Of a stretch of 64,000 nucleotides of DNA, positions 44,601 through 50,600 are shown in pieces. Positions within the stretch are counted from its first letter, which is position 1. Every line of letters starts with the position of its first letter. Source of the stretch: Hydrolagus colliei (taxonomy: Eukaryota); assembly GCA_035084275.1 (NCBI GenBank), contig CM068750.1, positions 11,284,001-11,348,000 of the forward strand, read 5' to 3'. The notes beneath the pieces were generated by a model. It did no database searches and was not told the DNA's origin. It was given only the letters and a program-made list of their open reading frames with translations. Position numbers and translations under genes: made by a program.

Positions 44601-47600
44601 ACACATAAGCTTAAATATTGATCTTTAACATATGGATATATACTGTTCTACATAGTATTAACTCCTAAATTGTTCTCAGTCACGTACCTACAGCTTTCTT
44701 CTGTTTTCCCACTGCCTGACAGATCTCTTTTGCTGCTGCAATCTGAGCCTTTTCCCCAAGCAGGCTTCCCACTGTGGCTCGGAGGATGAAGGAAATACAA
44801 CGGCGACAGCAAATGGCATCGATTTGCGTCTGGGTGGCTTTGGGATGAGACACTACTTCCAAAATATGTGCAAGTAAGGTTGAAAAATTCTGTTCCAACC
44901 AATGTCCACCCAGGGTAGAAACAAAAGCAACATAGGCCTGCGGCAGAAATAAACCATAAGGAAATTTAATTCATAACATATATGAAATCTCAAGATATTT
45001 TACCATAGAATTTTACTTTTCCAAAAACAGATTAAATGATTTATCAGCAATATGCAATGTGTGGCCTTAGAGGCTAATGGATGCACTTACGCACAGGAGA
45101 AATAATGAGTCAGTTCAGTGCATCAACTGTTTTGAGAGCTCCATTATAAACCAATTATAGGATTGAAAGCTCAAAACTCTAAAACTGCCCTGTAGTATTC
45201 TTGTCTGAATTCTGTTTTCTTGAGCTGAGCCTGTCTTAACTATATGGCTGAATGCAGGAATTCAGCCACTTACTATCCAACTCAGAGAAAAAGCAGAATT
45301 GTCCTGCTCCCATGAAGCAGCCCTTCAACACTCGTATCACTGGTGCTGGGAAGACCTGATAAGGCGCTATAACAAGTGAAAGGATTATTATTAATAGCTA
45401 ACTGTACTTAGATACAGTACTCTTCCAAACAAATGTACTGAAACCATTTTTTAGGGAACAAAATTCTCTAATCTTTCTGTTTGTCATTGTGGATAGGAAT
45501 TGTGGACTTAAAGATACTAATGTCATTTTTGTTGTTGTTAGCGACAACAACAACAACTTCTATTTATCTAGCGCCCTCCACGCCGGACGGCGTCTCAGAG
45601 CGCTTCACAATAGTGGATCCCGGGACTAAGCCAGGGGCAGGGGTAGAAAGGTGACCAAAGGCACAGTCGAAGAGAAAGGTCTTCAGCTGGGACCTGAAAC
45701 TGAGAAAAGAGGGGGCGAGGTGAAGGTAGTGAGGAAGGGAATTCTAGAGCCTCGGGGCATAGTGGCTGAAGCTTCGGCTGCTGAGGGTGGAGCGGAGGAT
45801 TCGGGAGACATGGAGGAGGCCAGACCCGTGGAGCTGGTTTGAGGAGAGACGTCAGAGAGGTAGGGGGGTGCAGAGGAGTGGAGGGATTCAAAAACAAGGG
45901 TGAGGATCTTGAAGTCAATCCTCTCGGGGATAGGGAGCCAGTGAAGTCTGGCAACGACTGGGGTGATTGGAGGAGCAAAGTTAGTTTGGTGTGGGTGAGT
46001 GTGTGGGCGGCACACTGAGTTTAGCACTGTCTTCCCTACCCATTAGGCTTTGTCTTTTTATCTTTTGGGCATTTTGGGGCTACCAACACAACAATCACAT
46101 TTGATTCATTGAAGCAAAAATAATTAGTTGGATGAATGTAAATTAGTTCCATGATAATGATTACCGGTATACAGATAAATCAAGCAGTAAAACTATGAAT
46201 CAAACAGCAGTCACAGAAACTATCCAACTACAACTGTGCTGGAGATGATATACCGCAAGTAACTTTAGTTATAAAAATAATCCTTATAGACGTCTCAAAA
46301 TGCTTCAGAATATACTGTATTAAGTGAATTGACTGTATATTTGTGGGCGAAACGAGCCAGGAAAATGGGCACAGCAGTGTCCGACAAACAGTTGTGGATT
46401 GAAATGATCAATTTATTATTTTTTTACGGGAATATTATCAGTTATGAAAATGTTTCACATGGAAATGTAGTTAAAATATCACTGAAACCAGATATCTCTG
46501 AGTTAAAATATCACTACAAATAATGATTTTTTAAACGGTAAGAAGCAGGTGTTATTTTTAACCTGAGTTACTCCTACTCGCACGTCTCTGCTCACTGAGC
46601 TGCCTCCTTTCAGCATCTCTCCACTGACACGGAGGAAACCGCTGCCTCCTCGCAAGAAGCCAGAAGCGAGCAGATCCATCGCTTCCTCCAGGGAGGTTTT
46701 ACGAACAACTTGTCTCGATCCTGAAGGGAATGAAAATAACCAATTTGAATGTGCCACTTGCAGTTTGCACAAAAGCATGGCAAATACACATCTATATTAC
46801 ACTACTGAAGCCTGGTTTTAATTCAACACATGGCTGCCCATTCCTCCTCCAATTCAGGGAGATGTAATTTCTCTGCCTTCCATAAAATGAATGCTGCACG
46901 ACCACAGCACTGGAATAAGGCAATCGGTGAGAAACAAAGAGGATTTAAATTTCACAAGATACTTTACAGAAACATGCAGCAATCGACAAGCAAACTTCAA
47001 ATATTGTTATCGTGCAGCTATTCATTTTGTGCTGAAACCTTACCTCAGACATTGACTTCAGTTTACTTCAGCTGGTTCGACAGGTTAAATTCAATGAGGA
47101 ATGCATTCAGGTAGAGAGAGCTCTTACCTGCTCCTTGCTTGGGCACCACAGCTGTAGCTAGAATAACCCCGAGTAGTTTTGAAACTGCTACACGTACGTC
47201 GTAATTAGAGCCTTCAAAAGCTTTAAAGCAAAGTGTCGAGACATTCTCCAGTTCTGTTGTCCACATAAACGCAGCTTCATTTTGAAGTTCCAAAAGGCAC
47301 TGCAAACCATAAATATCAATAAACGAATGACACAAAATGGTTTGAGGCAACTATGTATTGATTCTGCTGACAGACCACTCCAATAAACCATTAAATGCTA
47401 TACAGGTATCCCTCCCCAACCGCGGGGGATACATTCCTCTAAACCTCCGTGGTTGGTAAAATTGCGGTTGGAAAATGCAGGGCCCTATGGGAAACATGGG
47501 GATAGGGGAAGTAAGTTTGCGTTTCGTAGAACTAAAAACACACAAAAAAGTTATAACATACATGGGGATAGAGGGAGTAAGTTTGGGCGCATTGGCTGCC

Positions 47601-50600
47601 AGGATCTGCTGCAAGAAGCAGGTGTTATTTTTAACCTGAGTTACTCCTACTCGCACGTCTCTGCTCACTGAGCTGCCTCCTTTCAGCATCTCTCCACTGA
47701 CTAACTGATCTATACACAGAGAGAGACACGGAGGGTGGGGGTGGGTGGGGGGCGGGGGTACACGGAGGGCTGGGGGGCCTGCCTGACTAATCTACACAGA
47801 GAGAGAGACACGGAGGGTGGGGGGAGGTGACACGGAGGGCTGGGGGGGCTGTCTGACTGACTCATACAGACAGAGAGAGAACTGGGTCCTAATGCTAAAC
47901 ACTAGTGTTAAAACCCGTGGATAAGCAAGGATTATAAGCCATGGTTAGCAAGGGTTGTCGCATTTAGCAAACCGTGGATGTGTGAGTTTCGCGGTTGCCG
48001 AGGCCGCAGTTGGGGCGGGGTACCGGTATTTAAATGTATATTGCATAATCTCTTTAACATAGCATAACACCAAACTTACTTTTGTATAAAAGAACATGTC
48101 AAAGTGCTTGAAATAATGGTAAATTATTCATTAGAAATTAGTCTTCTGCCCTTGTGCAGGTTGAAGCATAAAAGTAGGAATAATGTAACAGCACAAAGTA
48201 AGAAGAGTATCGCAGTGCATCCATAAAAGCTGAAGAAATGGATACCTTTGCTGCAGCACAACGAACAGCCATTGATCGATCGGTCAGGCACGAGCGGGCA
48301 GCCTTGTAGATATCTCTGTGACACGGTGCAGCTGCAACTCCGAGACCACAAATTACCTGCTGCAAACTCAGCATAATCTCATAGCGCCCCTGGGACTAAT
48401 GACAAATCATACCAGAGAATCAGGTTAAACGTTTAATTTATATCAGGCTTACACTCTTATACCGTTGTGATATATATATGTGTATATATATATATATAAA
48501 TATTCAATACAATAGTTACAAGATAACAAGCTTGCCAACTTGTATTTTCGAAGCTTGTGTAAAAAGTGTAACAACATGTTGCGCACATATCAAAACAAAG
48601 TATGTTATTTGTACTGGTTCAAGCTGTTTTACAGAGATTCTCCAGCGTGTGTCAGAGTTTCTGGTTAAAGACCATTTCTTACCTCAGCACTTTTCATAGC
48701 TTTCAGCAAGTTCCCCACCGTATCTGTAAACGTATTCCCCAACATTCTACCCAGTTGCTCATACAAGGCTCCCAAACACGCAACTGCAGCCCTATAGAGC
48801 AAGAGCAACACATCAAAAGAACAGAAGAAATTTATACTATATGTTCGATCAAAAATAAAAAAAATTGCGCTTATCTTCCATTCAACTGATGTTGTAAGCA
48901 GTGAGGTTAACTACTATTTAAGTGAGCAGTCTCAACCCAGTCACTGAGTGTGAGAACTGAGCAACCCCTGTTGATTTAGCATACATGCTCAGAGGTGTCT
49001 TTGGGAAATGAAAATGTTATTCTGGTGCCACCGACGAGAGGGTGGTGTTTCTCAGTTTGGAGCTGTGGTGTTATTGTTGGTATAACAGTGGGAGTACAGC
49101 ACGTCACGTAAGCAAACTTCACTTCACCAGGAATTTCCCAATGCTAACATCCCTCACCTTGACAAGCATGGCATTTGTGGAGAGAAAAAATCTGCTTGCT
49201 GGCTGCATTATATTAGCATAATATATTCTTAAATTTAGAATGATTCATGAAGGTTGATTGAGGAAATGGCAGTAAGTGTACTGAACCTACTTCTAATTGT
49301 ATTTGGGATTATTTCACAATCGAGTTCCTCTCTGCGTAAAGCAATGAAGATTCATTATAGCTTCATTCATGCACATTGTGTGGTTTATCAACTCCAACCT
49401 TCACTGATGCTACTGTGTAATCTTTGCTAATGAAAAGTGCAATTTTTACCAATGTTAATTTTAATTTACTAGGATTAATTTATTTGCTAAATTTGTACTA
49501 ATTAGCATTGGTGTTAGTTTAAATATCACATTCTTGGCATTTGTGTAGGAATCTTAAATACTGTATCTCCACTCACAGTTTAGTTGGTAGATGACTTGGT
49601 GAATCATCCTTGCTCTTGATGATTTCATTGCACTTGTCAACTGTTTGATACACAGTGAATGTATCTCCAACACAGTAAAGCAGAGCCAGGTTCTTAGCGA
49701 TCAGTCTACGGATGGGTGGCCCCGGTGAGCTGTCTAACAGGGCTGTCAGTTGTTCAACCAGCTTCCTTTGCTTCTCTTTAATATCAGCCTATCAAGAGAC
49801 ATTAAGCGTTTATGCAATAAACCCACAGCTCCTCATATTGATTGCAAGATTGTCTTTTTTTTAAAAAATGACTTTCTCCAAACACCCCATTATCTTCAGG
49901 AAGGTAATTCTACAGCCAACGGTAACCTCCCCACTCCCACCCCGGGCTCATTGTAGTGTCCGCCTATGTCAAACTTTCTGTCACGCTACCCTGCATTAGG
50001 GGTGTCATATCAATGCAAGTTGTTCTTGGTGTTCTATTACATTTGTCGCCTTTTCTAGTCACGGTGTACCCCCATTACATAAAAATATATGGCTAGAATA
50101 CAATATATGGCTATTTACTGACAGATCTACCACAGCTACAATTCTATGGATGGTCACAAATTCAAGTTGCAATTTGTTGACAGTATATTTTTTTAAAAGA
50201 CTTGCAAGGATCATAACGTGTCTTTCCACACCACATTGCTTCCCAGCCATGATAAGCTGAATCTTTCAACCAAAGACCTTCTAACAAACTATGACAATGA
50301 TGCCAACAAATATTAATTGTGCTTAACTGAATACAGTACTTCAAGAGCAGCACAATGAAAATTCTGTGTTTTAGAGGGCACTGGTTTTATTTTCACAACA
50401 AATGCAATTGTCCAGTCCCAGAGCTCTTCCTTTATCTGAAATTAAGGGATCAACTACCTTCTGATAGTAGTAGCCAAATTCTCAAAATAGTTGTTTACGC
50501 ACAATATCTGTAATCAAACACTTTATCCAGAACTGTGCAACAAAACAGCACTGCAGGTAGAATTAGAATGCATTGTATAATTGTTGATAAGAGTTCATGT

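Follow-up and report, generated by a model that had tools for sequence, protein, structure and literature searches.

The question raised by this locus is how an exact copy of the end of a coding exon, together with its splice donor, came to lie inside a transposon in an intron of the same gene. In the window analysed here, a stretch of 64,000 nucleotides, positions 47613-47701 are identical to positions 46540-46628 at 89 of 89 letters, in direct orientation and at a spacing of 1073 bp, as was found both by repeat comparison within the window and by blastn. A sequence-only reading had described the duplication in the same terms, and the self-comparison of the window bears it out. The locus is probably a single-copy Pack-TIR that arose independently of transposition, through gap filling and template switching inside a long-resident element. 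The features on which the argument turns are collected in Table 1.

Table 1. Coordinates, in window positions, of the source exon, the captured copy and the parts of the element that carries it.
Feature	Position	Strand	Basis or remark
Source (parental) segment	46540..46628	-	23 nt of intron with GT donor (46540-46562) and last 66 nt of coding exon (46563-46628)
CTGAC followed by ACGGAGG at the source end	46624..46635	+	CTGAC is the right-junction microhomology
Coding exon (exon 6 of the sequence-only reading), 158 nt	46563..46720	-	Open frame; cag|G start, CAG|gt end; ends in phase 0
Intervening coding exon (exon 5 of the sequence-only reading)	47128..47299	-	Open frame, cag| and |gtaaga flanks; coordinates read by hand
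TA target-site duplication, left	47401..47402	.	Family homology starts at 47399-47401 in all four runs
Left arm, non-autonomous TIR element	47403..47612	+	Left TIR 47403-47425; family homology stops at 47609-47614
Captured copy: exon end and donor	47613..47701	-	Exact repeat; X5 and X1 junction contigs with 0 differences
Array of G-rich and GA-rich units repeated in tandem, directly right of the capture	47697..47880	+	Period 70, 1.9 copies
Right arm of the element	47702..48026	+	Right TIR 48004-48026; family contigs stop at 48028
TA target-site duplication, right	48027..48028	.	Window letters and family contig ends

The source is divided into 66 nt of exon and 23 nt of intron because the exon boundaries lie at 46563-46720 and the donor is included; translation and the splice flanks agree with the sequence-only reading on this point. 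That reading had also called the source the exon neighbouring the element, which is wrong, as the exon at 47128-47299 sits between the element and the source exon. The host gene may be HEATR5A/HEATR5. When seven exon-bearing open stretches were scanned singly against Pfam, none of the seven exceeded the curated cut-off, the best relevant match being a HEAT repeat (E 0.14; 12.9 bits, where 23.5 are required). The downstream exon, when searched against PDB sequences, returned no match at E up to 1, and the protein Atlas yielded nothing more specific than generic HEAT/ARM-like clusters, recognised at a level under its useful threshold. No repeat sequence was found within the duplicated segment itself. 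In the bin at 46400-46457 the depth of the run contigs ranges from 1205 to 18614, which places the end of a high-copy repeat at a distance of roughly 83 nt or more from 46540. Since the piece continues past the donor into intron sequence, as a pre-mRNA does, and source and target share one transcription unit and one orientation, an unspliced nascent transcript of the host gene might be imagined as the template for the patch. No spliced junction occurs inside the captured piece. We regard RNA-templated repair as quite improbable, for it has no specific support, and copying from DNA in cis accounts for these observations as well, by a route documented by Tan et al. (2021, PMC8277862).

The carrier, at 47403-48026, is 624 bp long, or about 555 bp minus the capture. 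Its 23-nt termini match at 19 of 23 positions (84.6% over 26 nt including the TA, by blastn), and the CAGG with which it starts may point to a resemblance to Tigger/pogo elements. The TA flanks, the imperfect termini and a tandem array within the element had all been claimed from the sequence alone and were recovered here, the array at 47697-47880 and a G-quadruplex-type motif inside it at 47733-47758. The only long open stretch that overlaps the element, of 146 aa at 47354-47791, runs across the captured piece and low-complexity repeats, and we judge that the element would carry no transposase gene of its own. The window holds no other copy of the family: each TIR pattern, at up to three mismatches, matched itself only, and in a blastn comparison of 47381-48050 with the window the outside matches never exceeded 33 aligned positions. 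The test of the family therefore relied on public data, namely the contigs of four runs (X1, X5, X6 and X7) compared with the window, of which 8777, 10403, 7116 and 3114, respectively, were placed. Word depth over 47386-47617 and 47908-48023 is about 1e5, as against 39-52 in single-copy bins, and the limits of family homology coincide with the two TAs (47399-47401 and 48028) in all four runs. A MITE family with these TIRs, as the sequence-only reading had supposed, thus exists, with thousands of contigs and a homology that stops at the two TAs, and by its TIRs, TA flanks and high copy number the element is a short non-autonomous MITE, probably of Tc1/mariner type.

The family does not have the captured piece. 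In contigs from other copies, the sequence passes from 47609 or 47614 straight to the tandem array (five such joints are listed), and past 47614 the family reads a different sequence, as 38 loose ends from X1 and 37 from X5 show. The depth of the interior bin 47618-47675 is 2.61, 91.4, 0 and 0 in X1, X5, X6 and X7, and arithmetic shows that these depths are wholly accounted for by contigs of the window locus itself. The depth of the 89-mer was 50.5 in X1, where 50.8 is expected for two copies, and 87.6 in X5, where 87.0 is expected, while the contig at the right junction has single-copy depth (37.8 against 39.3 in X1; about 55 against an inferred 52.3 in X5). The data thus support a family without the 89-mer, and an 89-mer present in exactly two copies in two samples of organism A, its uniqueness in the genome being judged indirectly, by depth. 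The expectation that the capture would be found in this copy only was supported. These observations also bear on a mobilised Pack element, in which the piece would have been captured in another family copy that then transposed here, or in which this copy would since have spread. Multicopy Pack-TIRs do exist, with four catalogued cases (given as 1.4%) in PMC8277862, and those lie far from their parents, whereas the source here is 1073 bp away; with family contigs that skip the piece and a depth that fits only the exon and this copy, we hold mobilisation to be extremely improbable.

The same contigs address the concern that the second copy is an artefact of assembly or polishing and does not exist in the genome. 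An exact short repeat in a high-copy element, beside a low-complexity array, is a setting in which assemblers can err. The run data are de Bruijn contigs rather than reads; each junction contig enters the repeat by exactly 30 letters, where the bridging rule needs 31, and among the run records no single contig spans the whole 89-mer and both element flanks. Nevertheless, record 13 of X5 (47583-47701) crosses the left junction and record 5 of X1 (47672-47812) crosses the right junction, each with 0 differences, and a contig of X1 over 46400-46628 likewise has 0 differences and a depth consistent with a two-copy 89-mer. X1 may be the sample from which the window was assembled, so only X5 counts as independent. 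With junction contigs free of differences in the runs of two samples, and with the depths of the 89-mer and of the right junction given above, an artefact is very improbable.

The capture appears to be young. The captured piece has 0 differences in 89, and the element copy that holds it differs from the family majority at at least 15 of 334 arm positions; if the piece were as old as the element copy, the probability of 0 in 89 would be about 0.014-0.022. The comparison supports a capture that is later than the insertion of the element, although the dating is rough because the private differences of the element may partly be subfamily markers. The sequence-only reading had argued for recency from termini that had diverged around a piece that had not. 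The contrast between the piece and the arms upholds the second half of that argument, and the first half carries little weight: the 19/23 match of the termini says little because the ends of the family are themselves imperfect. Of the four TIR mismatches, that at 48008 at least is private to this copy, and the divergence of the TIRs was rejected as a clock. The exon copy is spanned without a break by a single contig of organism B (46406-46676), and no contig of that organism lies on 47618-47675; a contig of organism B parts from the window sequence at 47363, short of the element by 38 nt, and continues for 314 unlike letters. The two organisms differ at 46641, within the source exon, by a synonymous change.

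The junctions of the captured piece suggest how it was acquired. Its first two letters (AA, 47613-47614) and its last five (CTGAC, 47697-47701) are common to the element family, which leaves 82 nt that are unambiguously foreign. The CTGAC at the right junction is unlikely to be fortuitous, since 58 of 62801 positions reach a microhomology of at least 5 nt (P about 0.0009-0.001); the AA at the left junction, at 2 nt, is within chance. Abutting the end of the source, TGACACGGAGG (46625-46635) forms an 11-nt match to the repeat unit of the element, an unusually long one, as 43 of 19728 random 30-mers reach a longest common run of 11 nt (P about 0.002), and this match plausibly chose the template. 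The occurrence of CTGAC and GACACGGAGG in both the exon end and the array, which had been pointed out from the sequence, holds by motif position: GACACGGAGG occurs four times in the window, at 46626 and, within the element, at 47725, 47807 and 47829. The recurrence of GCAAGAAGC at the left junction had been given a similar meaning. Its positions, 47611 and 46652, are real, but an equivalent recurrence also arises for 504 of 8902 random source starts, and GCAAGAAGC was rejected as a junction microhomology.

The recent capture in situ, by template switching or gap repair after insertion, that was first proposed from the sequence is supported by the family, the copy number, the source in cis, the microhomology at the right junction and the 0/89 divergence. 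The following course of events would account for these features. An abundant TA-flanked MITE would have been long resident in an intron of a HEAT-repeat gene when a later break, or a stalled replication fork, arose inside this copy, in the interval that follows the left arm and precedes the first unit of the G-rich tandem array. During repair, a 3' end may have left its own template and annealed by microhomology to the exon end at 1 kb distance, either on the same chromosome or on its sister chromatid, and synthesis would have copied 82 nt that run from the exon end through the splice donor into 23 nt of intron. A second microhomology would then have returned the strand to the element, for a gain of 82 nt and a loss of about 13 nt of family sequence, the loss being read from a family consensus in which agreement is only 0.63-0.65. 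The break and what caused it, the direction in which synthesis ran and the polymerase or pathway are inferred, and the repair pathway cannot be assigned from sequence. A hairpin or cruciform of the whole element was considered as the cause of the break and found no support, as its inverted repeats are confined to the termini of 23-26 nt.

It is also possible that transposase set off the repair, such that excision or a nick at an end of the element was followed by refilling with the sister chromatid as template, interrupted by a detour to the nearby exon. The family is very abundant, with contigs at least 99% like the window element numbering 845 in X1 (of 8777) and 1080 in X5 (of 10403), so recent activity of the family is possible; the capture of filler by P elements provides a precedent (PMC8277862). 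The breakpoints, however, are internal, the left one lying 210 nt in from the end of an element that measures about 555 nt, and the gap is tiny, at about 13 nt or 2% of the element, whereas post-excision repair is argued, in the same paper, to give bigger deletions whose breakpoints lie preferentially toward the ends. No autonomous partner element was seen in the window. We therefore consider a trigger by transposase unlikely, and return to gap filling within a resident element as the preferred reading.

Gap filling of this kind has been described in animals. Tan et al. (2021, Nat Commun 12:4280, PMC8277862) attribute single-copy animal Pack-TIRs to transposition-independent gap filling, and catalogue 370 cases, with exonic sources enriched, a bias toward parents in cis at less than 5 kb, microhomology at the breakpoints and internal gaps of small size, and with TcMariner elements as common carriers. 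As in those cases, a single-copy, non-TE piece stands here between two parts of one TIR element, with both arms reaching the termini and a family that lacks the piece; the parent lies in cis within 5 kb, there is microhomology at the breakpoint and the internal gap is small, the carrier is a TA-flanked element of Tc1/mariner type and the source is exonic. Identity and length relative to the parent are both 100%, where the published parental criterion is at least 90% identity and 80-120% length. By this fit to what characterises single-copy Pack-TIRs made in cis by gap filling, the case belongs to a known class, with differences from the published set: the piece, at 89 nt (82 nt net), is below the working cut-off of more than 100 bp, and the case might be rejected by the filter that allows no TE within 100 bp of the parent, as a repeat lies about 83 nt off. 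The locus itself was not found in print, the supplementary case lists of PMC8277862 lying outside the search, and no animal Pack-TIR study besides Tan et al. 2021 was visible among the matches listed (2019 onward).

Like the Pack-MULE and Pack-TYPE elements of plants (summarised in PMC8277862; see also PMC8903248 and PMC13317346), the element is a non-autonomous TIR element with a host gene fragment between its ends. As PMC8277862 summarises them, the plant elements are often multicopy, captured in trans and mobilised, whereas this one is single-copy and lies beside its source, and neither depth nor the family contigs gave a sign of mobilisation of the piece. The patch is also similar to the templated insertions left at repaired breaks, including those ascribed to polymerase theta end joining and to MMBIR/FoSTeS, insofar as both junctions lie at microhomology, few nucleotides were lost, and the template lies close by, in direct orientation and on the same molecule.

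Polymerase theta joining typically gives short inserts templated by the flanks. A patch of 82 nt taken from 1 kb away is longer and more distant than such inserts, and fits synthesis-dependent gap filling or template switching at a fork better than polymerase theta joining.

The exact 89-letter capture is a clean but ordinary instance of repair-driven sequence capture. It adds little in principle, given that hundreds of single-copy, microhomology-bounded captures in cis have been catalogued in animals (PMC8277862); captures of its size are probably undercounted because 89 nt falls below the 100-bp cut-off of that catalogue. It is, at the same time, a well-resolved and very young case in which repair inside a transposon has copied a piece of a neighbouring exon, with its splice site, into an intron of the same gene. 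On the gene strand the piece retains an intact GT donor and its original reading frame, it sits in a phase-0 intron, and it is preceded by a pyrimidine-rich stretch, derived from the (GA)n tract of the element, and by AG dinucleotides. The captured piece may, though we think it unlikely, be a candidate nascent cassette exon rather than a mere repair scar. If so, a 69-nt exon without a stop codon would add 23 residues duplicating those at the end of exon 6, and the locus would represent a partial exon duplication by transposon-associated gap filling, seen at its birth within one species. The locus offers a testable candidate for a new in-frame exon.

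Comparison of the window with itself revealed that an 89-nt piece inside the TIR element is identical at 89/89 positions to a segment of the host gene, in direct orientation and with starts 1073 bp apart, in a window that holds no N (N count of 0). The host gene, tentatively HEATR5 from the N-terminal sequence of that family, is on the minus strand, and the source overlaps one of its exons (see table). The copied segment consists of the last 66 nt of this exon and 23 nt of the next intron, donor included, as the sequence-only reading had described. That reading also called the source the neighboring exon, which does not hold, since another coding exon stands between the source exon and the element. 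The exon model is mildly supported by the differences between two organisms in the public data, A and B, because four of the six listed within these two exons are synonymous and two are conservative replacements. A Pfam scan placed 0 of 7 exon-bearing open stretches above the cut-off, a PDB sequence search with the downstream exon gave no match, and the protein Atlas returned only generic HEAT/ARM-like rows.

Coordinates of the source, the captured piece, the carrier element and nearby features in the window
Feature	Positions	Strand	Details
Quadruplex-type motif clusters	9738-11045, 15906-16076, 23268-23453, 59577-60163		G-rich or C-rich
Consecutive 9-mers	16058-16076		match the element's G-rich unit
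Overlapping open stretches, intron downstream of source exon	45598-46042	minus	141 and 119 aa, different frames, Pro/Ser/Leu-rich
High-depth intronic stretch	46400-46457		summed contig depth 1205 to 18614 over four runs; 39-59 immediately right
Source segment	46540-46628		
Source exon	46563-46720	minus	158 nt; cag acceptor before, gt donor after; frame open
Intervening coding exon	47128-47299		read from frame and flank inspection
TIR element	47403-48026		624 bp, TA on either side; 23-nt terminal inverted repeats, 19/23 matching
Weaker quadruplex-type motif, left arm	47480-47508		
Direct repeat, left arm	47494-47519, 47560-47585		26 nt, 92%
Captured piece	47613-47701		
Candidate exon with flank AG	47636-47709	minus	69 nt, in frame
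Tandem array	47697-47880		G-rich and GA-rich units
Quadruplex-type motif, array	47733-47758		32 nt from junction

The two open stretches in the intron that follows the source exon resemble an interspersed repeat more than a gene. Given the depth over 46400-46457, another high-copy repeat extends into the intron, its end at a distance of roughly 83 nt or more from the source.

Neither TIR pattern searches nor alignment of the element to the window found a second copy within the 64 kb, and public runs were therefore used for the family test. The public data comprised 12 runs from 6 studies, all as assembled contigs and none of them from RNA, and 4 of the 12 were placed on 46400-48130 at 85% likeness: X1 and X5 (organism A, samples S1 and S2), X6 (organism B) and a fourth run, X7, with 8777, 10403, 7116 and 3114 matching contigs, respectively. 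Across 47386-47617 and 47908-48023 the summed word depth was of order 1e5, and single-copy bins in X1 and X5 had depths of 39-52. Homology among the contigs begins at 47399-47401 and stops at 48028, which corresponds to the element with its TA flanks, and the sequence outside is unrelated and AT-rich. A MITE family with exactly these ends, which the sequence-only reading had presupposed, was present in all four runs. The number of left-arm repeat units varies among family copies, with joints that skip 65-75 nt or step back 52-61 nt. Judging from the 9-mers that match it elsewhere in the window, the tandem unit could have a relation to some more widespread G-rich repeat.

Family members in the runs lack the captured piece. 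At five listed joints, family copies elsewhere pass from 47609 or 47614 straight into the tandem array, and past 47614 the family sequence differs from the captured piece (loose ends: 38 in X1, 37 in X5; agreement 0.63-0.65) and reaches CTGAC, the start of the repeat unit, after about 13 nt. Relative to the family, about 13 nt thus appear to have been exchanged for 82 foreign nt. The AA at the left junction and the CTGAC at the right can be assigned to either partner, element or source. In the bin 47618-47675, inside the captured piece, depth was 2.61 in X1, 91.4 in X5 and 0 in both X6 and X7. The X1 value is a 4-nt overlap of one contig (record 5), and the X5 value is the sum of another contig (record 13) and 4 nt of overlap from a contig whose depth is about 55, so the depths in this bin are fully explained by contigs of the locus itself.

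Could the second copy of the 89-mer be an error of the assembly? X5 record 13 (119 nt) spans 47583-47701 and X1 record 5 (141 nt) spans 47672-47812, each with 0 differences, the latter at single-copy depth (37.8 versus 39.3). These records are de Bruijn contigs, and each runs exactly 30 letters past its junction, the expected k-1 and one below the 31-letter rule; none of the records runs through the copy of the 89-mer in the element together with its two flanks. For a two-copy 89-mer, the mean depth of the contig that holds it, computed at word length 31, was expected to be 50.8 in X1 and 87.0 in X5, and 50.5 and 87.6 were observed. X1 is possibly the sample behind the assembly, and X5 is a separate sample and study. 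The junction contigs and the two-copy depth make an assembly artefact highly improbable, and they tell against the piece having arrived inside a mobilised Pack element, which we regard as scarcely credible.

At the right junction the microhomology is CTGAC, and agreement of at least 5 nt with the family pre-junction sequence occurs at 58 of 62801 window positions (P about 0.0009). The source end reads CTGAC then ACGGAGG, and TGACACGGAGG matches the repeat unit of the element over 11 nt, a length reached by 43 of 19728 random window 30-mers and by 20 of 9721 30-mers within 5 kb, the latter apparently all from one G-rich site. The four occurrences of GACACGGAGG in the window are one at the source end and three in the element. 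A rough estimate by hand puts the 2-nt AA at the left junction within chance expectation. Of the microhomologies first proposed, CTGAC and the GACACGGAGG shared by exon end and element are borne out. Recurrence of GCAAGAAGC was rejected as junction microhomology, an equivalent recurrence being found for 504 of 8902 random source starts, which is not significant.

Most probably the element was broken, or a replication fork stalled in it, at a point between ...CTGCTGCAA and the first CTGAC, a site that adjoins the G-rich and GA-rich tandem array. The resected 3' end on the array side would carry the complements of CTGAC and of several GACACGGAGG copies and could pair, with loop-out, with CTGACACGGAGG, which is contiguous in the end of the exon. 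Extension by 82 nt would then copy this exon end with its donor and 23 intronic nt, and recapture on the left side could occur via AA. A reversed course that began at the left end would fit equally well. Short inserts are typical of flank-templated end joining, and because of the patch length and the 1-kb distance, synthesis-dependent gap filling or template switching at a fork would seem to fit better. Gap repair triggered by excision of the element is unlikely, as the gap is small and internal. Repair templated by RNA from the unspliced host transcript has nothing specifically in its favor and is very unlikely.

With 0 differences in 89 positions, the 95% upper bound on divergence of the captured piece is 3.4%. 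The copy of the element around it departs from the majority of the family at no fewer than 9 of 210 left-arm and no fewer than 6 of 124 right-arm positions. For a piece of the same age as the insertion, the chance of 0/89 differences, calculated from these minimum counts, would be about 0.014-0.022, a rough age estimate in that some arm differences may mark subfamilies. Between organism B and the window there are 16 differences over 647 positions of intron and exon. In B a single contig is unbroken over 46406-46676 and 47618-47675 is uncovered; a second identical copy would have interrupted that contig. These sequences point to a capture that is younger than the A/B split, or that was lost in B. 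An X6 contig (record 18) matches 46717-47363 and continues with 314 letters unlike the window, departing 38 nt before the element. This departure at 47363-47400 is an apparent structural difference at the orthologous site.

On the gene strand the captured piece keeps its GT donor and original frame, the host intron is phase 0, and the element supplies pyrimidine-rich sequence and AG dinucleotides before the piece. Because of these features, an in-frame exon of 23 residues with no stop is arithmetically possible.

Tan et al. (2021) described 370 Pack-TIRs in 100 animal genomes, 115 of them on TcMariner elements, and concluded that single-copy Pack-TIRs arise by transposition-independent gap filling (PMC8277862). 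As evidence they give that the parent is no more than 15 kb away in 56.9%, and in most of these no more than 5 kb; that 67.6% show microhomology of 1-36 bp (median 2) at one breakpoint or more; that the median gap amounts to 4.6% of the element; that breakpoints tend towards the element interior; and that exonic sources are enriched (PMC8277862). The present capture agrees with the single-copy cases in distance, microhomology, gap, interior breakpoints and exonic source. It differs from what they report only in that its 89 nt is shorter than the working cut-off of >100 bp and in that the parental copy has the end of a high-copy repeat at a distance of about 83 nt. Judged by its sequence, the H. 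colliei capture is of a kind already known in animals, the single-copy gap-filling Pack-TIR.
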